Positions 7,678-40,713 of a DNA stretch of 64,000 nt are shown piece after piece. The notes beneath the pieces are model-generated. The model saw nothing but the letters and a program-made list of their open reading frames with translations, did no database searches and was not told the origin of the DNA. The position numbers and the translations under genes were made by a program. How positions within the stretch are numbered: position 1 is the first letter of the stretch; every line of letters begins with the position of its first letter. This DNA is from Lepidodermella squamata (Eukaryota; Animalia; Gastrotricha). The DNA lies in assembly GCA_047495785.1 (NCBI GenBank), contig JBLDXI010000009.1, positions 5,022,001-5,086,000 on the forward strand, written 5' to 3'.

Positions 7678-8960
7678 ATGAAGCCGAGTTGGTTCCGAGT
7701 TGGAACCCACAGCTACCTAATCATCGGTGTTGCAACGATACTTGTAACCGTTTCAGTGTTTAATCAATTCTGCTGCAGATCAATTTATACCCCAGCAATC
7801 CCTCGGGATGGGACACCTACAATTCTTATCGCCACGTTATTTTTTGGCGGCAATTTCGAAGATGACGAATTGGGCCAACTGGCGCCAAATTGCCCGTATC
7901 AGTGCCGCGTAATTACCGAGTCGCAAATTACCGAAATCGGTATTGAAACCAGTCTAAAAATTTCCGACCTGGTTCTATTCCACGGCTACGCGCCTGATTT
8001 AGTCCCTGCGTTGCGGCGATTTTTGCCGTATCGCCGGCCTAAATTCAATCAGCGGTTGTTCTTGAATTCGAGTGATCAAATCTGGGCGTTTTTTGCCATG
8101 GAATCTCAGGACACCCAGCGGCGATTGGGCCGTAATTTGCACCCGATGATTGAGCCACGGCGGTTGGATTCAATTTTCAATTGGACCGTGTCGTTCCGCT
8201 CTGATTCAGACGTGTTCACGCCGTACCAATCTGTGAGAAATTTCGCCAAGTTTGGAGCGGAGAAATCGACTTATTTGCAATTTGTGACCTACAACCAGAC
8301 AAATCGAGCTAATTTGGGTGCGAAAAAGCGGCATCTAGCGGCGGTTATTAGCAACTGTGAAGCCTCTTCAGGACGGTTGGAATTGTTGGAAAAGCTTTCA
8401 AAACTTGGTCTTTCAGTGGACATCTACGGAAAGTAAGTTGATGCTTTCAGAAATATTTAAAAGATTTTCATCGGTGGATTTCACGAATTTTTAGATGCAG
8501 TCCGAATGGGCTCGAATGCCCAGGTAGCATGTCTCATGAATGTTACGCTTCACTGGCTCAAAAATACTTTTTCTACGCCTCATTCGAAAATTCGATATGC
8601 GCCGATTACGTAACAGAAAAGTTCTACAACATCCTCGACTACGCAATGGTACCTGTTGTGCTGGGTGGGGCTAATTTGACCCAGCTCATCGACGCCCCAC
8701 CGCGGTCACACATCGACGCGCAATCGTTCCAGTCGTTTGAACAACTCGCGGAATTTTTACTGAAAATTGCTGACAATTCGGAAGAGTATGCCAGTTATTT
8801 CGATTGGAAACGCGAATATCAGCTAGTAAAAGACGTGACTCTAACACCATTATGTGGTCTATGTAAGAAATTACACGAAAATCGGACGAAAAAAGTGATT
8901 GATGATATGAAGCAATGGCTTATAGACGGTGCGAAGTGCAGAACACTGATATATTCATGA
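7678..8960 (+). CDS. Alpha-1,3-fucosyltransferase (GT10), copy 1; exons 7678-8432, 8495-8960
   Basis: N-terminal type II TM anchor, DLVLFH, FNWTVSFRSDSD, ISNC, VDIYGKC, YFFYASFENSICADYVTEKF (alpha-1,3-FucT motif), VPVVLG, Y.SYFDWK. Confidence 0.95.
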
Positions 8961-9451: not shown

Positions 9452-10961
9452 ATGCGGATTTTAATTGATATCGTAATTATTATTTTAATTGTTACTCAAT
9501 TTTTATGTCGACCAGTCGAAACATCTAACATTCCTGCCATTCTTATCGCTACAAAATTTTTCGGCGATGCTTTTGAAAACGACGAATTGGGCCGAATGCC
9601 GTTAAATTGCCCTTATAAATGCCGCGTGATTAATGAATCTTTGATTGATAAAATCGGCTTCGAAACTGCGCTAAAACAGGCTGATTTAGTTCTATTCCAC
9701 GGTTATGCTCCTGATTTATTACCGAATTTACGCCGGTATTTGCCGTATCGTAAAATCACTCAAGCGAAACGGCCGAGTTTAGATTTAACGAATCAAATCT
9801 GGGCATTTTTTGCCATGGAAACAGCTGATACTCTTAAATTTCTAATGGGCCCGCTTTACCCCATTATCGGTCCAACAAGTGTTTATTCCGTTTTCAACTG
9901 GACCGTATCGTTCCGCTCAGATTCAGACGTGTTCACTCCGTATCAAGCTGTCAGAAAATTTGAGAGAATTGACGCGATAAGTCAAATGAATTCGACAAAT
10001 TTACGATTTTCGGCCTTCAACGCCAGTGATCCTGTGATACTGAACGGGAAGAAGCGGCACATTGCGGCTGTTATCAGCAATTGCGGAGCTTTTTCCGGTC
10101 GATTTCAACTGCTGGAACAACTTTCAAAACTTGGCCTTACAGTTGATATTTACGGAAAGTATGTCCCATTAAATTAAATAAAAAAATCATAAATTCTAAA
10201 GGTAAAGGTGTATTTCACATTTTCCTGATTTTTAATTAATTTTTAAGATAATAAATTTCTGGAGAACCCTTTTTTACTGCGATTTGAATTTTTTTCTGAT
10301 TGGGAATATTTTGAAAAAATTGAAACTAAATTACGATGCCTTCAAAGCTCTAAAAAATGTAGCACCTATCTTTTCCAGGTGTAGTCCGAATGGTCTCAAG
10401 TGCCTGGGCAGAATGTCTCACGAATGTTACACTTCACTGGCTCAGAAATACTTCTTTTACGCCTCATTTGAAAACTCTATATGCGCCGATTACGTGACCG
10501 AAAAGTTCTACAACATCCTCGACTACGACATGATACCTGTTGTGTTAGGCGGGGCCAATTTGACCCGGCTGATTAATGCCCCACCGAGGTCACACATCGA
10601 CGCGCAATCGTTCCAGTCGGTTGAACAACTCGCAGAATTCCTATTGAAAATTGCTGGAAATTTAGAGGAGTATGCCAGATATTTCGATTGGAAACGCGAA
10701 TATCAGCTAGCGAAAGACGTGACTCTCAACCCGTTATGTGGTCTGTGTAAGAAACTACACGAAAATCGCACGAATAAAGTTATTCCGGACATGAAACAAT
10801 GGCTCATAGACGATGCGAAGTGTGCAAGATTGAAAATTATCACCTACATCTACCCTCCCAACACAATTTCTCTATGGGTTAACATTTCGTATATAACTTT
10901 CATTATTTCAAGCTTTTCTACCGTTGTTATCAAACATGTGAAAAAAGTTTATTATTCCTGA
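9452..10961 (+). CDS. Alpha-1,3-fucosyltransferase (GT10), copy 2; exons 9452-10158, 10379-10961
   Basis: Same motifs and same phase-2 intron position as copy 1; exon 2 closely similar at DNA level; longer hydrophobic C-terminal tail. Confidence 0.94.
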
Positions 10962-13900: not shown

Positions 13901-14232
13901 TGTAGATTAATTGGCCGAAAAACGAACTGTAGAGGCCGAATTCAGGCCGAAGATACGCCATTTGGGCATAGGCCTTGAAAAATCGGAAAAAATATCAAAC
14001 ATTTAAATGTTTTCAATTTTTTCGAACAGCTTACCAGTGAAACTGGGAGCAAAGTTAGGCCGACCGTGATACCGGCGATGAAATCGTACGGTATGTAAGA
14101 CATTCTGTATTAAAAATTAATTATTCTTTCGCCGAAAAATTCAAGGATTTTTTACCTGTAGTTTTGAAGCCATTCGATGATCGGGAAGGCCTGCTTTACG
14201 TAGTGAATAGCTTTATGTTTTAGTTTCAACAT
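10993..14232 (-). CDS. SLC26/SulP anion transporter (SLC26A11-like) with STAS domain; exons 14232-14156, 14104-14035, 13973-13652, 13409-12502, 11973-11536, 11376-10993
   Basis: FPIIEWLQNY, DFIAGITVGLT, GLYSSF, VGPSA, PVISGF, NELFAIG, VPKAALAAILI, STAS LVIDG..VDYTSLQ; in-phase GT-AG junctions. Confidence 0.93.
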
Positions 14233-14589
14233 TTTTGAGAAATAATAACTGGCTTGTAAGCAAGCACCTTGTACCGCTTGCTAGTTTAAACTTGAAATTT
14301 GAATTATTTGATAAGTTGCCTTATGGCGTCCATATTTTGAGTTCACACGTGCTCATCACGTGCTTCATAGCTCACGTGTTCCAAGACCGCAACTTTTTCA
14401 TTATTTTGCCACTCAAATTCTCGAAAATTATGGGACAAGTTCTATTTTCAAAACAGCCAGCCCCGGAAAAGGACAAGTTTTTTATTTGTATTTTCGCGTA
14501 TTTAATATCACGCGTTACATTTTTTGAAAAAAAAACAATATTTTATAAAAAAAATTGGATTGCGTCTCGAGAACTTGGTTGAATTGAAA

Positions 14590-15384
14590 TCAGCAATACC
14601 AGCCTCGGTGGCAGCCGACTCGGCCTCGATAGCATCCTCCGCTGCCGTAGCCGCAACTCGGCCCGTAATAGCCTGCGTTGTAAAATCTGTTGCCGCAATA
14701 ATTGCGGCGATAAGTCGTCGGTGGTGCCAACACGACGTTATTGTTCGGATTATTTCCGACGTAGTAAGCATTCTGTGAATTGAAAAAAACCGTCGTCAAC
14801 AATAATAATTGATTTTTGCAGCCTAAAATTATTCGGCATTCATGAATAATCAACCAAAAAGCAAACTATGGCTTTGAACTATGGCCAAGTCATTTTTAAC
14901 GAAGGAAATTAAAGGGTCTTACTTTTAGCGGAACCAAATTTGACTGTTAGCGGAACCAAATTTCGAAATTTTCAATGGGCCAAAAGTCACTTTTCGAACC
15001 TTTCAAGCTTGTCATGATTAATCAGCATAATTTGAAATAAATCATCATTAAATTCAGCGTAAAATTCTGTATGAGACGCATTCTACACTATTCTAAATAT
15101 GTACTAACAGTTTAATTTCTAAAATCTTGAAGAAATAAGTACCTAATTGAATTTTGTTTCCCGTAAAAATGCCGTTAAAATAAGGGATTGCAAATATGAG
15201 ATGTGAATGCTCAATTAGCTTCGATTTTGACCCACATTTTTTTGGATTTTTCCTTGTGACAATTTGCCGCTGGATTGTAAAAATTAAACGCTCATTTTCA
15301 AAGACCTACCTGAAATGCAGGGTATCCTTGGTAGATGAATCCACCTTGATGATACGCAACAGGCCTAGCGACGTATGAGCCCAT
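14590..15384 (-). CDS. Microprotein D (85 aa), Gly/Tyr/Cys-rich; exons 15384-15310, 14772-14590
   Basis: MGSYVARPVAYHQGGFIYQGYPAFQ|NAYYVGNNPNNNVVLAPPTTYRRNYCGNRFYNAGYYGPSCGYGSGGCYRGRVGCHRGWYC*; cag|gtaggt donor, ttcacag acceptor, phase 0; paralogous to neighbours. Confidence 0.75.
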
Positions 15385-16132
15385 TTTTATAAATATCTTT
15401 CTTTCCCCGGTTACAACGCGTAAAAATATCTGAATGTGAGAAAAAACGATCGCCTCAGCACTGGAAAATCTGGACACAAAAATCGATCAATGATTAATGA
15501 TTATATTTCGTTCTTATACTATGTACGATTTTACCGTGCGCGTGACGCAAATGAAAGAGGTATGAATCATTCAATTTCCGGTTTTTTGACCTTGGTCTGG
15601 GAAAATGGCGGTTTTTAATTACTTGTTTATGTGAGTGCACACGCTAAATTTAGCGGTCCATCACTAAATTTAGGGTTCCCGTACTACATTTCTAGGAATT
15701 ATGGTCCTGTCGAGTTGAAATCTCAATTTGTTATTGAGAAGCTCAATCGATATACACCTATATCTCAATATTATTTTGCGTAGTTTGCACAATTTATGCT
15801 AATTTCGTGGTCAGCAGTAAGCGTTTCAGCTGTCAAAGCCGATATCGATTTCCAGTATCGCGCTTCTCACAAATCGCTGATTTTTCCGATATCATCAGCA
15901 TAAAAACACAGTGTCGAGTAGTAACAATTTCGAAGATGCAAAGATACTTGAACCTTATGTAATTTCTGAGGTAAAAAAATATGCACACCTCAGTCATGTC
16001 AAGTTTTATTGGGCAATCGGGCATTATTCCGCATTTGAGGCAAATGATACAGGGAATATATAACAACACGAGTATCAGCACTGCTGCGTTATTGAGTTAC
16101 TTCCGATTTTGATAAAAGTTCATTTGTTATCG

Positions 16133-16554
16133 TCATCCGTTGTAAGCGCTTGAATATCGGCTGCTTTCAGACGGGTTTCGCCGGTACATGAAAGCGGCGA
16201 AAATGATATTCGGCCGATGCCCGAAGTTGTATCTATTCTGAAATCAAAGCGGAATAAATCAAAAATTAAATTTTCGAATTCACATTTGACATGATGATGA
16301 TAAATCCGCGGCTCCTAATTAGATTTAAAATTAAATTATTAAAAATTTCCCAGATGTGGAATAATTTTTTTCTGAAATTTCCAAATTACGAAAAATCTCT
16401 CGTAATTTTTGTGCCTTGGATTAGTTTAGGCATGCGTTTAAAATACCAATAATTGAATAGACTGGGACCTATGACGTACCACTTTTCCAAGATAACTTTC
16501 GTTGCCATGCAGGCCCCGGTGGACAATGAGCGGCCGAGCAATAAAAACGCCCAT
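16133..16554 (-). CDS. Microprotein C (59 aa); exons 16554-16480, 16237-16133
   Basis: MGVFIARPLIVHRGLHGNESYLGKV|NRYNFGHRPNIIFAAFMYRRNPSESSRYSSAYNG*; gtacgt donor, atttcag acceptor, phase 0; exon 2 aligns with exon 2 of D (N.Y..G..PN..YRRN). Confidence 0.65.
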
Positions 16555-16960
16555 GTTAAAAGTAAAAACAATATAGCCGAGTATGTCAAATGCAATGTAT
16601 AACAGACTGTGACTGCGTGGAATTTTTAAACCCAGCAACTGTGAAATTCTGATGCGCACGTAAAATCGTTCATAAGTCGCTAATTTTCGGTCAAAAATCA
16701 ATAGCTTACGCCATTTTGTATCGTCGCTATCCTGTGTTCATAGTGCATAGGTAGACTGAGTGCTGACGCACTTGCGGCATTAATCGAGCTACCTCGGCGG
16801 ATTACAAGTCAATCAAGTTTAAAATCAGGAAGTGGCCTTGATGCTTTCCACGGGGAAATGAAGGTTAAATTTAGCCAGCCATGGGTGATTAAATTTTTTA
16901 TTAAAATTTCGTGATTATTAGATACAGGTGCAATTAAAATTATAATTTGGGCCCGCTCCT

Positions 16961-17238
16961 GTTAGCGGAACCAAATTTACCGTTGCGGACCTAAATTTTA
17001 GGATATTGATTGGCCCCGAAACCAACTTTCGGAACTTCTAAAGGATGATATTCTAGACCATTGTAATAATAAATAATAAATTCAGCGCAAAAATCTGTGC
17101 AAGACTTCGCGTCATCCACTTTAGAAATTATTTGTTGACCCAATTTCTGAAAATTATTTGAAAATCAACCTTTGGGACATTTCGACTTAAGCTCCCCGCA
17201 AGATGCAAATTTGGTTCCGCAAATTTGGTCGGTTAGCT
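16961..17238. mobile_element. MITE-like repeat with imperfect terminal inverted repeats; related partial copy at ~14925-15150
   Basis: gcggaaccaaattt at left versus aaatttggttccgc at right; 14925-15080 shares gttagcggaaccaaattt and taaattcagcg.aaaa.tctgt. Confidence 0.55.
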
Positions 17239-17379
17239 TTATGCAAATCAAAACCTCAAGTTTCAATTATTTTCTTAATCGCAGTTTTCAAGCATTTTTG
17301 GCACATTTTCATTTTATTTTTTTACTTTATTTCAATACAGCATCATTGGATTTTATTGAGAGATGTAATATAGTTTTTG

Positions 17380-17929
17380 TTAGTCGAAAGAGCCGAATGA
17401 CGATAGCGAGCCGAACGAGCCGTGGTGGTGCAGGCCCATGCCGATGGCGCCGCCGATGATGGCGCCCTCGACGAACCCACCGCCGCCGCCGTAGTAACCC
17501 GGCGCGCCGTAGTAGCCAGGGTGTCCATAGTAGCCGCCGTCTGCGACAACAACAGTCGGTCCAGCCACGACAGCTGGAGGGCCAGGATAGGCGACCTAGA
17601 CGAGAACAAAAAATAAATATTAAGGTTACGAATAAAAAAGATGAGCCACCAGATTATTGAAAAAAAAGAAAAATCGTTAATTCAGAATTTAAATTTCAAA
17701 ACAAAAACGGAAAGTCAATCAAATCGTCCCAAAAATAGATAAATTTTCCAGAATTATAGGACTTCAACTTGAATAGGCTAACATGATTTCAACAATTTTT
17801 ATTGAAATTGTCCTTGAAAGTCTATAAATTTCAGCGAAAACTAACTGGTCCTTGAACAGGATAATGTGAATGAATGGCGTCGTGGGGGTGGTGATGGGTT
17901 ATAATAGGTCTAGGCATACAACAGCCCAT
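17380..17929 (-). CDS. Microprotein B (99 aa), Pro/Gly/Tyr-rich with glycine-zipper-like tail; exons 17929-17846, 17595-17380
   Basis: MGCCMPRPIITHHHPHDAIHSHYPVQGP|VAYPGPPAVVAGPTVVVADGGYYGHPGYYGAPGYYGGGGGFVEGAIIGGAIGMGLHHHGSFGSLSSFGSFD*; gttagt donor, tctag acceptor; GC-rich exon in AT-rich background. Confidence 0.8.
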
Positions 17930-18926
17930 AAAACCTTGAATAATAGTTCAAATAATAGTAATCTAAAATAAATGAAAAAATCGTAAAAGATTGGAGTCAA
18001 AACATTTTAGTACAGTTGTTTAATTTGTCGCAGGTTATATTATTTTTAAATGTCACATTTAAGCGCCTCGATTACTTTTTATTATACCTACAGGCCAGTT
18101 CATGACAACATGAATAATTCTAAAAACGCATGAATCACGATGTGAACGGTGTGAATAAAACTAGTTTGCCAGGTAATGAGGATTAAAAACCCCATGTTTT
18201 ATTGGATAATTAACAAATCACGTATATCGTTATTTCTGGCGCAATCCGTTCATTATAATGCTACGCTAATGATTCATAGCTTTGGGGGCACAATGGCTGT
18301 ATTTACTCCGGCTCTTCATTCCCGCTGGAGTAGGTATATACGATAGGTAATATTAGATTTCGCAACAGGGTGACTACAAGGAGCGATATCATGCATGTGA
18401 CCTGTATTTTTTACACAATAAAATCCGGGGTCACAAAGGCATCGAACTTTCATTATTCGTGCTTCTTGGTTAGAATTTATGGAAACTTGAATCCTATATG
18501 AACTCGATAATACTGATGTGTTTCTTGGCAGTGGTATAATTCCGATAATGATATATCAGCGGGCTGGCTAATGGTATATAAACCGTATTTTCTCCATTGG
18601 CAAACAATGCGTGCCAGTTAATAAGCAAGTTCTGGCAGACAAAAAATTATGCACCAATCGATAGTTATCGAATTTTTCTGGCCCGCACAAATTGATGGTC
18701 ACGGATTCGTACCAACACCAATGCTCTCGATTGAATCGTAAAAATATTCAAAAAAAATTAACAATTTGGGTTTGGATAAATCAAACTTTCAAAGCTAACC
18801 GAAAATTTAGTTAGAATTAATTTAAATTAATTTCAAAATTTTCAAACGATTCAGGCATATTTTGCCATGTATCAAAATTTGTTTATGATTTTTTTTTAAT
18901 TTTCAATAATGAAAAACACGACATAC

Positions 18927-19007
18927 CGGTGCTTGGACGGGATAAGGCGTGTTGATGGCGGCATGGGGATGGTGTACGATAACAGGCCTTGGCATACAAC
19001 AGCCCAT
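18927..19007 (-). CDS. Microprotein A first exon (duplicate of B exon 1), probably an alternative first exon splicing to 17595
   Basis: MGCCMPRPVIVHHPHAAINTPYPVQAP followed by gtatgt phase-0 donor; no separate exon 2 recognised between 18926 and 17930. Confidence 0.7.
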
Positions 19008-21536: not shown

Positions 21537-23942
21537 ATGGCTAATATGTCTCAATGGAAAGTTTACTGGACGAAGTTCGCTCGAAAACACCAACCCCGCT
21601 TGAGGGACATGTTCCCCATCATCAAATGGCTACCAAAATACAAGTAAGCTCATCCTTTCACTTAATGGTAACCTCAACTTAATTTTCATGGTTACAGGCT
21701 AAGTAATGTTCCTTACGACTTGATTGCTGGTGAGTTTCGACTTTTTTCGTCGGTTTTTGTTATATTTTGATCATTTTTTAGGGATCACTTTGGCTTTAAC
21801 CATGCTACCGACTTCTTTGGTAAAGTCAGTTCTCAGCTTTCAGCCATATTTTGATAGTTGTGTCAACTAGGCTTTCGCGCAAATGGCATCACTCCGCCCA
21901 GAATATGGTCTCTACAGCTGCTTCCTTGCTCAACTAGTTTACATCTTCATCGGAACTAGCAAAGACGCCGTAATCGCCCCGTCAGCCATCAACTCAATGC
22001 TAATGGGTCAATTCAACGCGGAAAACCCGCTATGGCACGAAGGCGATGGAACTTACGCTTGCATCTTGGCGTTCTTCAGCGGGTTAACACTTTTCCTTAT
22101 CGGCTTTTTGAAACTCGGATTCATAGCGAATCTTTTTTCGACTCCAGTCATCACTGGGTTCACAGCCGCAGCTTGTCTCTGCACGATTTCGTCGCAACTC
22201 AAGTCATTCTGTGGACTGAGCAGTGCTCCTAATGAATCTCCAGCCGCTTTTGTTAAGCAAATCAAGAATGTCTACGATAGGTGGGACGAAAGGAAGGATT
22301 GGGACATCTACTTTGGCATTTCATCCCTAATCTTCCTATTCTTCATTGAATACTCATACAAGTTGACTGAGTTCTACCTGAAAAGGCGGCCTGAACCCCC
22401 TACCAATTGGGGTAGGAAGTTCCAGAAGTATGGAATGGAAGCGTTTAGGATAGTTGCTTCCAGCCGCAGTATCATTGTCTTCATTCCAACCGTGGCAATT
22501 GCCTACCAGTTAACAGTTCTTCACCAAGATTACGAGAAGAACATGACAATTGTTGGCTACATCAAGCCAGGGATACCCGCAGGTCGTTTCCCAGTTATGA
22601 CACTTTACAACAACTCAGCTGATCAAAATGGGACTAAGGAAGTATTACAAACTACTGGAGAGGTTTTCGAGAAACTATCGTCAGCTTTAGCTATAATGCC
22701 TATAATGCTAATGGTCGAGCTATTTGCGATTCTGAAAGCGTTAGGCCAGAGGAATGGCTATAGGATCGAGGCGACCAATGAGTTGATAGCGATAGGCATC
22801 GGCAATTTCATCCAGTCTTTCATTCAAGGTTTCCCGGTGACGGCTGCCACTTCACATTCCTCCCTGAACTCGCAATGCAGGGTCAGATCGAGCTTAAGTA
22901 CCATCCTCTACATCATTTTGATCCTTATTGCTATCCATGAGATGACTGATATCATCAAATACGTGCCAAATGCGGTCCTTTCAGCTATCTTAATCTCAGC
23001 TGTTCACAATTTGATCGATTATAGAACTGTTAGTTGTTGCTTTCGGTGATTCCTGACTAATTTTATGTCTTTATAGGCTATCCGAATCTTCAAAATGCAT
23101 AAACTCGACTTTCTCATGATGCTTTTCACATTTTTCATGTGCCTATTCTACGAGCTTGCCCAGGGAGTGTTGATATCAGTCCTAATCAATATGGTAAGTC
23201 CTATTATCGCCTGGAAACATACGTCTAATTTAGTATTCCTTCCTAGCTCTTCTTTTTAAGGCCTATCATTCGAATGGATGCTTCCGTTTCGCATGAAATG
23301 TTGGAGGTGAAACAAGGTGGAGCTCCTGAGGATTCTGTAACTATAATTCAGCTTTCACATGGGGTAAAATACCCATCAGTTGAGCGATTCATCGATAGGA
23401 TGACACAACTGCTGTCAAGTGACTACAAACACATTGTTATCGACTGCCGTTTTGTAACTGGCATCGACTTCACGGGACTACAGGCGTGGCAAGCTTTCTT
23501 CGAAATGGTCCATATTAAGCAGAAATACGTGATTTTCGCGAATTTACGCAACTCAGTCCGCAGGCAGCTGGAGGAAATTGGCCTGGAGAATTTCCAATAC
23601 GTTGCCAATGTCGAAGAAGCTGTCCATGAGCACAACAGTGAGAAAACGGCGAGTTTACACGAGAAAACGCTGCTGGAGTCAAACAAGAAGTTGAGCAGCC
23701 TGATTTCCATCATTTCCACTCCTGGCCAGCAGGCCCCAGCCACCCCGGAAGATTATGGCGCCTTAGCGTTGGAAAACGCCGCGACTAGTGGTGCTAATCC
23801 ATTTGTCAGTAACAAACGAGCGAGAACCTCAGGCCTCTACAGCACTTTTGTCGATGAGGAGGACGAGGATGATGACGTCGTAAAAATCATGTCTTACCAG
23901 CCTCAAGTGTCCGGGAATTCGATCAGTTTTATCAAGCTTTAG
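21537..23942 (+). CDS. SLC26/SulP anion transporter (SLC26A11-like) with STAS domain, second paralog (about 6 exons)
   Basis: MFPIIKWLPKY exon at 21537-21643, small exons PYDLIAG / ITLALTMLPTSL, GLYSCF, PVITGF, NELIAIG, VPNAVLSAILI, STAS IVIDC..IDFTGLQAW. Confidence 0.93.
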
Positions 23943-25805: not shown

Positions 25806-28416
25806 ATGATTTTTCTAATTTATGCTTTGATAATAATAATGCCTTCTATCAGTGCGGGAAAATTGAGCCTCAACACACCACTTACCAATCATCGAATTTT
25901 TTCATCAACGAACAAAAAAGTCGATCAATTGAAGTTGACTTTGAACGTTCACATGAACTATGGTATAAGGCTATATTTCCTTCTATGCAAACATACAATT
26001 TATCTTATGAAAAACAGGGGGTGTCTTGTTTCCAGCTGGTCCCATTTATACCGAACCTGCTAGGATAGCTCTTGATATCATTGAAAAGGCTCAACTGCTG
26101 CCCAACTTCAAACTAACATTGGAAATATTCGACGACGAGGTCAGTCTTCGATCTGCAAAAAAACCGAAAGTATTTTTTGTTCAAATTTTTTCTCAGTGCG
26201 ACGCTCGTCAGTACCCGAAAGCCTTTTTCAAAGAAATTGTCACGGTTGACGAGAATAATGGACCGAACAAAGTTCCTTTCTACATTGGATCGGGTTGTAC
26301 CAATGCTTATGCGAATCTAGCGTCTCATGAAAACATGACAACGGTAATAAAAAAGACCCCCATGTTATTGCACAAATAGCAAATGTGTAACAAGCAACCA
26401 AATTCTTGATCTTTGATCCACTTTGTCTGGTTTAATTATTCCACTTCCATGTATCCATAGATGTCGGTCATTAGCGGTGATGCCAAGTATTTCTATGGCC
26501 GCCATGACAACGCTTTGGTTATGATGCCGTATCAAGACATCTTTTTCGAAGCCGTGCTGAACTTTGTAGCAACAATCGGCTGGAATTATGTCTTCTATTC
26601 ATGCGAAGCCACGGAATACTACTTGAAGTCTGACGCTATAATTGTAGAGAAAGCTAAACAACTCAAGGTTCACGTCGAATTCGCGCCAAAATTCACATTC
26701 TATCAGGGCCAGTTTGCGAACCTCGCCGATATAAGGCCAATTCTTAACGAGCTGAAGGAAAGAAATGCACGAGTTATTATATTCAATACAAAAGCCGCGG
26801 CTGTCGTTGCTTGCATTCTGCACGAGATCGGCATGTATGGCCCGGGATACGTTTTTCTGATGAATGCCGTTACAGCTTTCATGCCAAGTTCGCCGATTCG
26901 TTTTCTCGTTCCGGGGTGTACAGAGCAAATGTTGTATGAAGTTCTGAAGAACGTAATTTTCTTCGGTCACGCATCGATATCGAATGTTGACGAAAATCGC
27001 ACTGATTCATTTGGCATGTCTATCAAGCAATTCGATCAAATGATGAAAGACCGCATCGATAGACCCGAAACCTCGACTCTGTGGTGGTACTATCGGGCAT
27101 CCTACTACGACATGGTCCTACTAACAGCAATAATGCTCAACAGAACTGAGACTGCGCTGAATTCTCGAAATGACTCATTGATAAACTGGACATTAGGATC
27201 TCAGAATCTGCAAAATCGCGGTAGGGAAATCAACAATATCATGGTAGAGAATATGAAGAAGTTGAAGTTCCACGGGCTGTACGTTGAAATGGTGGATGAA
27301 TCTGATTGGAATTCTATAGCTGGGACAACGGCTTTCTACCAAGTTCAGGATATCCCAGGTGTCTCTCTGAATAACAGCCTAGGGCTATCTGGGCGTCAGC
27401 GGAAAGCAGCTGTTGCAACTTTCGATTCCAGAAAACCAGGGGCAATGTTGAAGTTAGGGCCCGAAAAACTTGTCTGGCGAACTCCGCAAGGTCTTCCTCC
27501 TAAAGACCGTATCAAGGTTATCGACGTTTCAGTGCCATTCATTTCGTTCAGTACAGCGATTCCTCTTTCTACAATAGCTGCAATTCTGGTCTTAGTAAAT
27601 ATCGCCCATCTAGTCATGAATTCGCATAGAATTGCGAATGATTCAAAGGATCTGAACGCTTTCAGCGGAGCGGGAAATTTCGCAATATTGATTTTTGTTC
27701 TGATAACTGTCAACGAAGAAGTCGCCAGAAAGGATGTGCATCTTCGCTTCATGATTGCCTGGCCACTGGTAGCTATAGGGACTGCGGTATTAATTGTGAT
27801 CATTATCGCAAAACTCAGCGTTGGACGGTCTTTATCATATAAATCCACAGTGGCTAGAAAAGAAACTTTTCGGTTTGGGGCTGTGTCAACTACGGTGAAA
27901 CCTCCGGTGCCAAGCAAGAAAATCCGTGAAAGGTTTCGATTTATGATTGCATTATTAGTTGTATCTTACGCTATTCTATTTCTGATTTGGTTCCTTATCG
28001 AACCTTTGCGGTCAGAGCCTCAATTTTCCGAGCCATGGGTTGACGAAACTGATATAAGTCAGCATTACAGAGAAGTCACTCTCATTTGCACATTTGGTAG
28101 CTCAGATTCAATTGCCAAATGGTTCATCGCCGCTATTATTGCCTCGTCCGCTCTGCTACTCCTCAAAGCTCTGCTTCTAGCAGTTGGCTTAAGAAAAGTT
28201 GATCTATCAAGCCAATCTACCGACGTTATCATGGCTAGATCATTGGCATTTTGCTTTGTAATTCTGATCCCTTCCGGAATTCTAGTTGTTGTGGCGTTTT
28301 TTGGTAGGACTGCTCAGACTTTTGCGATAGGTTCCAGTGTCATCGCCGTAGTTATTGCATCGATCAATACATTTGCTCTGCTATATTCGAATCGTAATAA
28401 TCGCTTAGCAACATGA
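25806..28416 (+). CDS. Class C GPCR, GABA-B-receptor-like, copy 1; exons 25806-25962, 26018-26139, 26197-26343, 26461-28416
   Basis: Signal peptide; Venus-flytrap/ANF-receptor features (LLPNFKL...DDECD, IGSGC, LKERNARVII, GMYGPGYVFL, YD); P.D linker without Cys-rich domain; seven hydrophobic helices with W...EPL and LA..LRKV. Confidence 0.85.
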
Positions 28417-29718: not shown

Positions 29719-32462
29719 ATGAAGTTAAAGATCGGATTTTTGCTCGCAATTATATGCGTTCATTCAGCTTCGTTTGAAAAGTTGAAGCTCTACTCGCCTC
29801 TGGCCAGTCGCTACCTGTCTCCGAAAATCGATGGAACTAGGCCTAATCGCACGAAATTGACGTTGAATGTTCAAATGAACTATGGTTTGAAGCTACTTAA
29901 ACTTGCCACTGACGCGCTTTAACGTCTCATTTGACGGGATGATTTTCCGGAGCACGAAACGTATTAATTCGTGCGCATAATAGTGGAACGTTAAAGCACG
30001 TCATGCAAAACCGAGATCAAGTGAGGTACCTAATTTTATCTACAGGCGGCTTCATTTTCCCCGCTGGTCCAATTTACTCTGAAGCTTCGCAAATCGCGCT
30101 GAATGTCATTGCATCAGCCGATATACTTCCTGATTTCGACTTGGCTATCGAAATATACGACGATGAGGTGAGTACGTTAGGTATTTGTCTTGAAAAATGC
30201 AATTCTCATGATGTTCACTCAAGTGCGATATCACAAAATACCCAAGGGGATTGTTCACGGAAATCGCCTCAGTCGACGAAAGCGATGTGCAAAACAAGGT
30301 GCCAGTTTATATTGGTGGAGGCTGTACGAATGGTTACTCAAATCTCGCTTACCACGTCAATATGACTGCGGTAACACAACGCTAATCAGTTTTTTTCTGG
30401 TGAAACCGCTCTTTTTCAGCTTTCAGCTGTAACGGGGGATGGCAAGTTTTTCTACCGCAAGTATGAGGGCGCGATGTTCTTCATGCCGTACCAAGATATA
30501 TTCTTCGAAGCGATTTTCCATTTCATCGCTGCAAATGGTTGGAAGTACGTATTCTATTCATCCGAGTCAAGCGAGTACTACCTGAAATTAGACCCGCTAG
30601 TTGCAGAGAAAGCTCGAAATAAAGGCGTTCAGGTCGAATTCGCCCCGAAATTCACATACCTATTTCTACGCAAATCTCTATTCATAAATATTGAGGATAT
30701 TACGCCTATTCTTCTCACGATGAAAGCTAAGGATGCTAGAATCATCATTTTTGACACTCCAATGATAGCAGCGGTTGCTTGCTACTTGCATAAAAATGGG
30801 ATGTTTGGGCCTGGATATGTTTTTCTAATGACAGCTATACCAGCTTTTCTACCGAACACGCCCGTCCGCTTCCTTGTCCCTGGTTGCTCCGAGCGAATGT
30901 TGTACGAAGTCCTGAAAAGCGTTATATTTTTCGGTCACGCCTCGGTATCAAATATCGAAGAAACCCGAATGGATTCTTTTGGGATGACCATTAAAAGATT
31001 CGATAGCCTAATGAGGGAAAGAATTGAAAATCCAGAGGCTTCGAATCTTTGGTGGTACTATCGAGCCATGTACTACGACATGGTCCTACTAACAGCGTTA
31101 ATGCTCAACAAAACAGAGACACAACTCAAGTCTCGAAACGATTCATTGATAAACTGGACGCTAGGTTCTAAGAATCTGCAAAATCGTGGCAAGGAAATCA
31201 ACACGCTGATGGTCGAAAATCTACGTGAGATGAAGTTCAAAGGTCTTTACGCTGAGATTACGAATTCCTCTGATTGGAATTCTTTAGCTGGAAAGACGGC
31301 TTTCTACCAAGTTCAGGATATCCCAGACGGCCCTCTGAATAACAGTCTAGGACTATCCGGTCTTCAGCGGAAAGCAGCAGTTGCAACTTTTGATTCCAGA
31401 GAATCTTCTCCCAAGTTGTTGCAAGGTCCGGAAAAACCCATCTGGAGAACTCCTGATGGACTGAGGCCTAAAGATAAGGTTGTAATACTCAATATCCCAG
31501 TGTCTTTGGTCCCAAATAGAGCCTCAATTCCTATTTCGTCTTTGGCAGCGATTTTCATAATTCTAAATTTGGCTTTTGTATGCCTGAACTTGGCAAGAAA
31601 AGGATCAACTCGTTTTCCCAGAGCAATATACCTGAATTCTCTGAGTGGGATAGGTAATGCAGCTATCATGACGTTTGTTCTGTTCGCTGTCAATGAGAAC
31701 CCTGGGCAAGCAGATATTCATTTGAGATACATGATTGGCTGGCCTTTGTTAACAGCGGGTATCGCTGCGATAATGACAAGCATTATAGCTAAGCTTCAAA
31801 TGGCAAGTTCCTTGACTGATAATTTTTACCCTGTTTCAAAAACTAATTCGAAACCCACATCGCTTCGGAGATTTGTGAGGGGATTCCCAAACACTACGCT
31901 TGTTCCTAAAAGATCCAAGCCTGGTAATTCTGTCGGCTCTAAAATGCCACTTCATATCGCTTTGATCTCAGCCGCAATTCCACTTTTCTACGCCATGATT
32001 TTCTTGATTTGGTTCCTAATCTACCCACTAGAGTCGCAGGCTCTTATCTCGGAGGCAAGAGTTGATCTGGTTGATGTCAGCGTGTTTTATCAGGATGTCA
32101 TAATTATTAGCTCGTTCGGAAATTCCAGTAATGCTGCCACGTGGTTCTTGGCTGCTATAATATCGACTTTCGGAATTATGTTTCTCAAAGCGATACATCT
32201 TGCTGTTCGACTGCGGAAGGTCCAGCTTCCAGATGACTCTGCGGATTTGGTTCAAGCGAGAACGTTGGCGCTTTGTCTAACAATACTTATCACTGCTGCT
32301 TTGGTAGTAGTTCAGGCTCTGTTCTCCGGAAGTCAGCGGTCCTTTATCGTGGCTACAAGCGCAATGGCCATTTTGGTTGTAGCTTTCAACTCTTCGGCCT
32401 TGATGTACACAAAAATTGGAGAATTAATGCAAGGGCGCAACGGAAATCGCATGAGCAGGTGA
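29719..32462 (+). CDS. Class C GPCR, GABA-B-receptor-like, copy 2; exons 29719-29884, 30046-30167, 30224-30370, 30420-32462
   Basis: Same exon structure and motifs as copy 1; uninterrupted frame. Confidence 0.85.
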
Positions 32463-38087: not shown

Positions 38088-40713
38088 ATGTTTGGGTTAC
38101 GGACTCTATTCCAGATCATCTCAGTCGTCTTTCAGCTATCAGTTAATGCAGCTAAGGTGCCTCTAAATGCTCCACTAACAACCCGCTACATATCGGCTGG
38201 CAATTTTAATGACTCCAGTCGGCCTCAGCTAACCCTGAATGTACAGATGAACTACGGTAAGAGCGCTTATTTCTGCTCTTCATTATTAATTATTCATGTC
38301 GTAAAATAGGTGGAGTGATATTCCCAGCAGGGACGCTATACACAGAATCGGCACGAATCGGTCTCGAAATGGTAGAAAGGGCCGGCATTCTTCCGAATTT
38401 TCAGCTCGTTATAGAGGTATTCGATGACGAGGTAAGATGCCAGATGCCAACAATTCCCTTATCTGCAAATCTCACATTTTCCTTATCAGTGCGACTCGAG
38501 ATCCTACCCGAAAGCCTTTTTCAACGAAATTCTGGTTGTTGATGAGAAAAAGGGTCCAAACAAGTTGCCATTCTACTTGGGATCTGGCTGCACTAATTAT
38601 TTCGCGAACTTTGCAAACCAAGTCAACATGACAACGGTATTTCTCTCTACCTGCATGCGCCTATTTCACTTTTTTCTTTCAGTTAAGTGTCATCAGTGGC
38701 ATTGACAAGCATTTCTACGGCAGACATGAAGGCGTTATGGTCTTGATGCCTTTTCAAGACATCTTCTTCGAAGCAGTCCTAAAATTCGTTGCAGCGAATG
38801 GTTGGAACTACGTTTTCTACTCCTGTGAAGCCTCGGAATACTACCTGAAATCGGACACCATCCTCATACAGAAGGCGAAACAACTCGGGTTACAGATCGA
38901 ATTCGCGCCGAAATTCGCCTTGTTCCCTGGATGGTTCGCTAGTAATGTTGACGATATCCGGCAAGTGCTCGTCGAATTGAAGCAGAGAAAAGCTAGAATC
39001 ATCATATTCAACACTCGGCTTGTTCCTGTTGTTGCTTGTATCCTCCATCAGATCGGAATGTTTGGCCCGGGCTATGTTTTCCTGATGAATGCGATTGCTG
39101 CTTTCGACCCCAACTCCCCGATCCGTTTCCTCGTGCCGGGGTGTACGGAGCAAATGTTATACGAAGTTCTGAAGAATGTTATATACTTCGGCTATGCTGC
39201 AATATCGAATGTAGACGAGAATCGCACTGATGCGTTTGGCATGTCTATCAAGCAATTTGATCAAATTATGAAAGACCGCATCGATAGACCCGAAGCCTCT
39301 ACCCTGTGGTGGTACTATCGGGCCTCCTACTACGACATGGTATTGATGACAGCGATAATGCTCAATAGAACTGAGACTGCGCTGAATTCTCGCAATGACT
39401 CTTTGATAAACTGGACAATAGAGTCTGAGAACCTGCAGAATCGCGGTAAGGAAGTCAACAAAATCATTGTTGAAAATTTAAAGAAGCTGAAATTCCGTGG
39501 ATTGTATGCTGAAATGTTGAACGAAACTGACTGGAATTCTTTGGCCGGAACGACTGCTTTCTACCAGGTTCAAGATATTCCGAATATGACGCTCAACAAC
39601 ACTCGAGGGTTATCGGGCCTGCAACGAAGAGCTGCTGTAGCGACTTGTGATTCTCGAGAGCAAAATGGTCATTTGAAGTTGGGTCCTGAGAAAGTCATCT
39701 GGGGAACTTTAAGCGGGCTTCCTCCAAAGGACAAGATAGTTATCATCAACATCGCTGTTCCTCTAGTTCGACCAAAGGCATCCATCCCTCTAACAACAAT
39801 AGCCGCAGTTCTAACGCTTGTTAATTCGGTTTATATCGGACTGAATTTATCAAGAAAGCGCTGTTACGTTGATATCATTAGTGGATTTGGGAATCTAGCC
39901 ATCATGCTGTTCGTCTTCATTTTGGTCAATGAAATTCCTGGTAGAGTTGATATTCATATTCGTTACATGATAGCCTGGCCTCTACTCACAATCGGCGTAT
40001 TATCTGTAATTACAGGACTGATAACTAAACTTCAAATGTTTAAAGGTTCTGCTGAAAAATTGAGTCGAAGCAACTCAAAGCCTAATTCGATGACTAGTGG
40101 CGGATTCACCAGATTGAAACGTCCTCGTTCCAGGGCAATGTTTCAGGAGAACTCCACAGTTAGCACAATCGTTCTTAGGGGAAACGACGTATCCAACGCA
40201 AAAGTTACGAAGAGATATGCTATGATATACTCTGTGGGTGGAGTGATTCTACTCCTTCTCATATTCCTCATCTGGTTCTCCATCGAACCTTTCAGCCCTC
40301 GAAGCGTTTACTCTGAGCCTGAGGTTGATAAGATGGATATAAGCCTATTCTACCGTGAGGTCACTCTGATTTGCTACCTCGGAGGATCCGAATCGATTTC
40401 TACATGGTTTATTATAGCTATCCTTGGCATAATAGCTTTAATGCTCTTGAAGGCGTTACTTCTTGCCGTGAGTCTGCGTAAAGTTGTGTCTGCCGAGTTG
40501 GTTATGACGAAATCTATGACTTTCGGCCTAGCTATTCTGCTGCCTGCTGGTGTAGTGATAGTTTTGGCTCTTTTTGGCGGTCAGGTCCAGTCATTTGTGG
40601 TTGCTGCTAGCACGATAGCTGTCGCTATATCGTCACTCACTACAATGGGATTGCTCTATGGATATAAGGCGGCGGAGTACAATTCGGCTCAACCGCAAGT
40701 TTTAGGGGTTTGA
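38088..40713 (+). CDS. Class C GPCR, GABA-B-receptor-like, copy 4 (4 exons)
   Basis: Same intron positions (NYG|G, DDE|CD, MTT|LS) and motifs as copies 1-2; intact frame. Confidence 0.85.

Follow-up and report, generated by a model that had tools for sequence, protein, structure and literature searches.

Four small genes lie in tandem on the minus strand of a 64,000-nucleotide stretch of genomic DNA from the gastrotrich Lepidodermella squamata (hereafter the window; contig positions 5022001-5086000, G000:C9). These genes, called A to D, start with a short exon encoding Met-Gly, three variable residues, Ala or Pro, and Arg-Pro (MG-x3-[AP]RP), and a fifth, intronless member, E, is found outside the window. 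Exon 1 of A, both exons of B and the whole of E are shown to be under purifying selection at the protein level. With modest confidence, we favour the view that A to E form a real, taxonomically restricted family of small proteins, the start of which would be acylated to serve as a membrane anchor. Taken by itself, the anchor mechanism, which is suggested by N-terminal motifs, is a tentative proposal that falls somewhat short of even.

The original prediction placed the start codons of the four genes, with their MG-x3-[AP]RP openings, at 19007, 17929, 16554 and 15384 of the minus strand, and all these coordinates were found again on rereading. The phase-0 GT donor described at the end of each first exon was also borne out (GTATGT, GTTAGT, GTACGT and GTAGGT for A, B, C and D, respectively). 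AG acceptors at 17595, 16237 and 14772 lead to 71, 34 and 60 codons before the stop in B, C and D, and the predicted products have 99, 59 and 85 amino acids, in agreement with the lengths of 59 to 99 residues that had been announced. The three second exons had been described as divergent and Gly/Tyr-rich; three AG-bounded exons do exist, but the label does not suit exon 2 of C, where there are only 2 Gly and 4 Tyr among 34 residues. AATAAA signals are observed 23 (the first of three), 123 and 104 nucleotides 3′ of the stop codons of B, C and D, respectively. Additionally, the guanine-cytosine (GC) content is 0.48-0.67 in all seven exons, 0.27-0.32 in their introns and 0.33-0.37 in the spacers.

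The start itself is also unusually concentrated at this locus. When the pattern MG-x3-[AP]-[RS]-P-[VILMF] was searched as degenerate DNA throughout the 121.2-Mb assembly (151 contigs), 22 matches were obtained, versus 8 in a reversed control, and 4 of the 22 fall within 3.7 kb on one strand of the window, where ~3e-4 would be expected by chance (a ~1e4-fold excess). Upstream of A to D, no common motif was found beyond the level of shuffled sequences, and a search with a model of the nematode spliced leader SL1 found nothing. Unpaired acceptors are present 29, 33 and 45 nucleotides 5′ of the start codons of A, B and D, respectively.

Between the first exons of A and B, 20 of 81 aligned bases have changed but just 7 of 27 residues, and the NG86 method yields a nonsynonymous divergence (dN) of 0.139 and a synonymous divergence (dS) of 1.71, that is, a dN/dS of ~0.08. 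Among 100,000 simulated runs of 20 random substitutions, only 0.06% produced so few amino acid changes without a stop codon (p = 6e-4). As the 100-base flanks of both exons show 31-37% identity, equivalent to that of random, unalignable sequences, the conservation ends exactly at the exon borders. Exon 2 of B, in turn, matches E (BLASTP, 2e-9). In the aligned tail, B and E share 23 of 34 residues but only 7 codons, which means that synonymous sites are saturated and, therefore, that the peptide, and not the DNA, has been kept. Furthermore, a score of codon usage, for which 4372 codons of the neighbourhood, mostly from genes for membrane proteins, served as the training set, supports exon 2 of B, E and exon 1 of D, and is uninformative for the remaining short exons.

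E is a single unbroken frame of 107 codons, with its stop codon 3.8 kb before the start of the window and 18.8 kb from D. It starts with MGSCLCP, and its PYPVQQGPV aligns with HYPVQGP/V of B across the intron of the latter. Since E reads through this junction without an intron, the two exons of B make up one frame and, as far as sequence comparison goes, E confirms the predicted splice model of B. The tails are also similar at their ends (GFLEGALIGGALGLGMG...SFGSLS...GSF in E and GFVEGAIIGGAIGMGL...SFGSLS..SFGSF in B). Thus, the proposal of a tandem family that combines a conserved N-terminal exon with divergent, low-complexity tails is supported, although it was incomplete, as this fifth member lies outside the span originally noted. 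The surroundings of E are unrelated to those of A to D: Dpy19, a CoA-transferase III gene (AMACR-like), E and a UBX-domain gene follow one another on the same strand. E begins 66 nucleotides past the CoA-transferase stop codon, with an AG acceptor 17 nucleotides before its ATG, and it is a matter of speculation that E might be a retrocopy that relies on an operon-like unit for its expression. Exact look-ups returned nothing for E and nothing for 14 neighbouring open reading frames (ORFs), ordinary genes included, which makes them uninformative on expression.

The relationship of C and D with the other members is supported by weaker evidence. They share with A and B the gene structure, the intron phase, the N-terminal motif and their adjacency, and it is through the short motif, gene structure and adjacency only that they appear to be linked to A, B and E. 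Their second exons align with each other from the first residue past the acceptor (BLASTP, E-value of 0.004; N-x-Y-x-x-G-x-x-P-N ... YRRN), and the codon-usage score of D exon 1 is 7.6 bits, versus a maximum of 6.0 among 1679 non-coding windows.

No second exon of A has statistical support, and it is possible, if rather doubtful, that the window contains three of these genes instead of four. In this case, a single gene would have A and B as alternative first exons, which would use their own promoters or trans-splice sites and would both be joined to the acceptor at 17595. The two exons share a phase-0 end, ...YPVQ[AG]P, and are under selection, as this arrangement would allow. By contrast, a plausible, though unproven, exon specific to A lies at 18631-18494, behind a 295-nucleotide intron; the AT-rich, intron-like tract 3′ of A ends near 18750-18630, and AATAAA signals are present at 18203 and 18083, between A and B and 3′ of the candidate. 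The candidate opens with CAG/AAC (Asn), as C and D do (CAG/AAY), and it has YHYRNY where D has TYRRNY. However, its GC content is only 0.38, and its comparison with D is not significant (BLASTP E-value of 0.79, or no alignment). Neither of two candidate second exons of A matched Pfam at an E-value of 1 or lower. That 18150-18780 might be a repeat was considered and rejected, as this stretch is single-copy in the genome.

The five proteins all start with Met-Gly, followed by different sets of residues. A and B have Cys3 and Cys4, then Met, and Arg7; E has Cys4 and Cys6, and C and D have no N-terminal cysteines. PROSITE PS00008, a loose and unspecific pattern for N-myristoylation (G-{EDRKHPFYW}-x(2)-[STAGCN]-{P}), was applied at Gly2, and C and D fit it, as had been claimed, while MGCCMP of A and B fails on Pro6 and retains Cys3 and Cys4. 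A signal peptide had been held to be absent, and by hydropathy the first exons indeed have no hydrophobic core of this kind, with maximum 15-residue values of -0.15 to 1.13 that are broken by Arg-Pro. The compositions are strongly biased: 23% Gly, 11% Pro, 10% His and 8% Tyr in B; 18% Gly, 16% Tyr and 6% Cys in D; and 15% Ser, 14% Gly and 12% Pro in E, which also has one PPPY motif. A hydrophobic stretch of 15 residues (hydropathy of 1.5-1.6) with three overlapping GxxxGxxxG motifs is found in both B and E. In an AlphaFold2 model built from a two-sequence alignment, E is disordered (mean predicted local distance difference test, pLDDT, of 47.5) with one helix, at residues 70-84, that corresponds to the glycine-zipper stretch; apart from this short helix in B and E, the family proteins are predicted to be disordered.

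In the mechanism that we propose, the conserved Met-Gly start would be acylated, with Gly2 myristoylated in C and D and with Cys3/4 (A and B) or Cys4/6 (E) S-palmitoylated, as in SH4 domains and GAP-43. The acyl anchor would tether a disordered tail, rich in His, Pro, Tyr and Gly, to the cytosolic face of a membrane. In B and E, the GxxxGxxxGxxxG helix could provide a second contact, either with the membrane or with other helices, and it could drive self-association, while the variable tails would determine the binding of partners or metals.

The closest precedents for such an anchor are the SH4-type start of Src-family proteins (MGC...) and GAP-43, where an N-terminal Gly2 and/or adjacent Cys are followed by a basic residue. 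The acylation motif of GAP-43 is MLCCMRRTKQVEK, MLCCMRR (PMC2994833), and A and B read M-G-C-C-M-P-R where GAP-43 reads M-L-C-C-M-R-R (PMC2994833). As in those systems, the motif would stand on an otherwise disordered protein without a signal peptide. By contrast, there is no homology past the heptapeptide, Pro6 of A and B is excluded by the myristoylation pattern, and the family proteins have 59-107 residues and no further domain, their acylation being proposed from motifs.

Other known families resemble parts of these proteins. Pfam includes the glycine-zipper families Gly-zipper_Omp, Gly-zipper_YMGG and Rick_17kDa_Anti. B and E share with glycine-zipper proteins three overlapping GxxxGxxxG motifs in a hydrophobic helix of 15 residues, but no Pfam family was matched at an E-value of 10 or lower, and the segment, which C and D do not have, is of limited length for spanning a membrane. 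Transmembrane proteins with such GxxxGxxxG zippers include C19orf12 (PMC4470416) and bacterial glycine-zipper toxins (PMC5380434).

The small proteins of the CYSTM and DAZAP2 families, which the original prediction had named for comparison, also have low-complexity regions rich in Pro, Tyr and Gly; at the same Pfam threshold, neither the exons nor E matched either family. Unlike CYSTM proteins, no C-terminal Cys-rich transmembrane module is present, as the cysteines of D are in a hydrophilic Gly/Arg tail; the Cys/Arg tail has no hydrophobic stretch, and hydropathy over 15 residues in D exon 2 peaks at -0.14 (residues 2-16). Secreted Gly/Tyr-rich peptides, such as the nematode NLP/CNC-like and cuticle proteins, differ in that this family has no N-terminal signal peptide.

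The mammalian high-glycine-tyrosine keratin-associated proteins are small, Gly/Tyr-rich products of tandem duplicates, with scattered Cys and Arg and no signal peptide. The tail of D, GYYGPSCGYGSGGCYRGRVGCHRGWYC, resembles them in composition only, a likeness that may serve as a lead, but there is no detectable homology, the phyla are unrelated and those proteins do not have an MG-x3-[AP]RP exon.

The family had been reported as unrecognised, and homology searches, carried out exon by exon and with the whole of E, agree with this description. No family was found in Pfam-A for any exon or E (E-value of 10 or lower), no relative when E and the second exons of B and D were used in a word-indexed protein search, and no match among PDB sequences. 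An exhaustive phmmer search of E against 1.84 billion representatives found no credible relative; the lone match (E-value of 4.7e-4), a 459-residue tandem-repeat fragment that looks bacterial by eye, was discarded as spurious. In the ESM Atlas, the best scores were 0.84 for E and 0.76 for D exon 2, below a useful level. A scan of metagenome contigs with the B/E alignment yielded 600 pattern matches, 0 of them confirmed, and the same scan with the neighbouring Dpy19 gene returned only animals, with an identity of at most 37% and no usable relative. Within the genome itself, searches with every piece returned only the five members.

A separate observation concerns another contig (L012, C7:3926268-3926293, minus strand), where an isolated ORF, MGNFVARPMHHPHLWHNIK and then a stop codon (MGNFVARPMHHPH...), extends for 19 codons without a donor and combines a start of the C/D type with an HHPH of the A/B type. 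Judging from its sequence, this motif match may be due to chance or may be what remains of a sixth member.

Several observations weigh against a family of acyl-anchored proteins. A and B (Pro6) and E (Pro7) fail PS00008, and Gly2 could merely reflect a preferred ATGG start context. The glycine-zipper segment has only 15 residues, contains Glu and was modelled with low confidence (pLDDT about 56). The introns of the proposed genes are of 242-537 nucleotides, versus ~51 and 65 for the first ones of the co-oriented SLC26 neighbour (window positions 14050-14232). C and D have no close paralogue and, therefore, the evidence of selection does not extend to them. Finally, codon usage favours the +1 frame of D exon 2, in which there is an ATG-initiated ORF of 87 codons (14508-14771, minus strand); this score was given little weight because the training genes mostly encode membrane proteins, and the ORF had no Pfam match at an E-value of 1 or lower.

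The main rival explanation, which we consider unlikely, accepts that the genes are real but proposes that their products are soluble: disordered cytoplasmic proteins, rich in Gly, Tyr, His and Cys, that would act as matrix or cross-linking, condensate-forming or metal-binding components, with Met-Gly being kept for translation context or N-terminal processing. The failure of three of the five members to fit PS00008, the dominance of the tails in the overall composition and the disordered model of E are all consistent with it. However, conservation in the family is highest in the N-terminal octapeptide, Arg7-Pro8 included, and not in the tail; cysteines adjoin Gly2 in exactly those members without an acceptable residue at position 6; and B and E retain the hydrophobic glycine-zipper helix despite saturated divergence.

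A more elaborate version of the anchored family is improbable at present. It supposes a class, not seen before, of doubly tethered microproteins, held by the acyl anchor and by the C-terminal zipper helix of B and E, with a disordered linker rich in His, Pro, Tyr and Gly in between, which would self-assemble at the inner face of the membrane; in it, E would be an intron-free retrocopy expressed 66 nucleotides behind a spliced-leader operon gene.

We find it slightly harder still to believe that part of the ORFs, or all of them, have no function, either as frames open by chance, as duplicates in decay or as ORFs of recent de novo origin. The suspicion would mainly affect C and D, the first exons of which share only 45% DNA identity, and it is fed by the lack of homologues in any database searched and by the weak codon-usage scores of the short exons. 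By contrast, the dN/dS of A and B, the retention of the B/E peptide at saturated dS, the clustering of the start motif, and seven intact exons with canonical splice sites, exon-like GC content and poly(A) signals 3′ of B, C and D are difficult to reconcile with it.

It is very improbable that the Met-Gly exons belong to the SLC26 gene with its start at 14232, as alternative 5′ exons or upstream ORFs. They share its strand, and D ends 358 nucleotides before its ATG, but every unit is completed by a second exon with a stop codon and by AATAAA, paralogue E stands alone beside unrelated genes, and the SLC26 gene begins with an ATG exon of its own that includes the usual PIIEWLQNY motif.

As the original prediction stated, the genes lie between two SLC26 genes, both neighbours being recognised by Pfam as Sulfate_transp (Table 1). 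The 2.8 kb that separate exon 1 of A from the plus-strand SLC26 gene contain no convincing reading frame.

Table 1. Positions of the five small genes, the candidate second exon of A and the adjacent SLC26 genes. Coordinates are those of the window, except for gene E; a slash marks a splice junction.
Feature	Position	Strand	Description
Gene A exon 1	19007-18927	minus	27 codons; MGCCMPRPVIVHHPHAAINTPYPVQAP/GTATGT; starts MGCCMPRPVIVHH, ends PYPVQAP; GC 0.57
Gene A candidate exon 2	18631-18494	minus	45 aa + stop; acceptor tttgtctgccag/; 295-nt intron; unproven
Gene B exon 1	17929-17846	minus	28 codons; MGCCMPRPIITHHHPHDAIHSHYPVQGP/GTTAGT; starts MGCCMPRPIITHHH (MGCCMPRPIITHH), ends HYPVQGP
Gene B exon 2	17595-17380	minus	71 aa + TAA; Pro/Gly/Tyr-rich; glycine zipper FVEGAIIGGAIGMGL then HHHGSFGSLSSFGSFD; GC 0.67
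Gene C exon 1	16554-16480	minus	25 codons; MGVFIARPLIVHRGLHGNESYLGKV/GTACGT; starts MGVFIARPLIVHR
Gene C exon 2	16237-16133	minus	34 aa + TGA; NRYNFGHRPN...MYRRNP
Gene D exon 1	15384-15310	minus	25 codons; MGSYVARPVAYHQGGFIYQGYPAFQ/GTAGGT; starts MGSYVARPVAYHQ
Gene D exon 2	14772-14590	minus	60 aa + TGA; Gly/Tyr/Asn-rich, Cys/Arg tail; GC 0.54
Gene E	G000:C9:5017863-5018186 (L004:1303-1626)	plus	Found by genome search with B exon 2; outside the window
SLC26 (Sulfate_transp) gene, downstream	14232-11527	minus	Pfam; first exon MLKLKHKAIHYVKQAFPIIEWLQNYR/gt; ATG 14232, 358 nt past the D stop
Second SLC26 gene, large exon	21883-23049	plus, transcribed away from the cluster	Pfam Sulfate_transp 2e-62

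Other features were observed in the window. The 17-mer AAATTTGGTTCCGCTAA has 252 copies in the genome, versus 0 in the control, and they often form inverted pairs ~250-320 bp apart, as in miniature inverted-repeat transposable elements; a full copy of this element lies between B and C (16950-17235), and a tandem end fragment is found in the intron of D (14928-14963). On the plus strand, three tandem ORFs of ~650-660 codons (26461-28416, 30474-32462 and 38737-40713) encode an ANF_receptor ligand-binding region, with a sub-threshold 7tm_3 match in the third (31.4 bits versus a cut-off of 33.5), and together they resemble a local array of class-C G-protein-coupled receptor-like genes. Two tandem fucosyltransferase (glycosyltransferase family 10, GT10) gene exons are also present on this strand (7678-8436 and 9452-10177).

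Families of tandem-duplicated, fast-evolving, low-complexity small proteins are a familiar class, and the one described here is an ordinary orphan family of a barely sampled phylum. As there is a single published gastrotrich genome, the lineage-specific genes of these animals are almost unstudied, and this locus offers a testable example of small genes that are maintained by selection and that would probably escape standard gene finders, with the intronless E as an internal control that validates the splice model without RNA data. Should the acyl anchor be real, these genes would amount to a compact natural series in which a single anchor is combined with several tails, useful for learning how membranes are organised by short proteins that are lipidated and disordered; if it is not, they would remain an orphan family like the many others to be expected where a phylum is unsampled.

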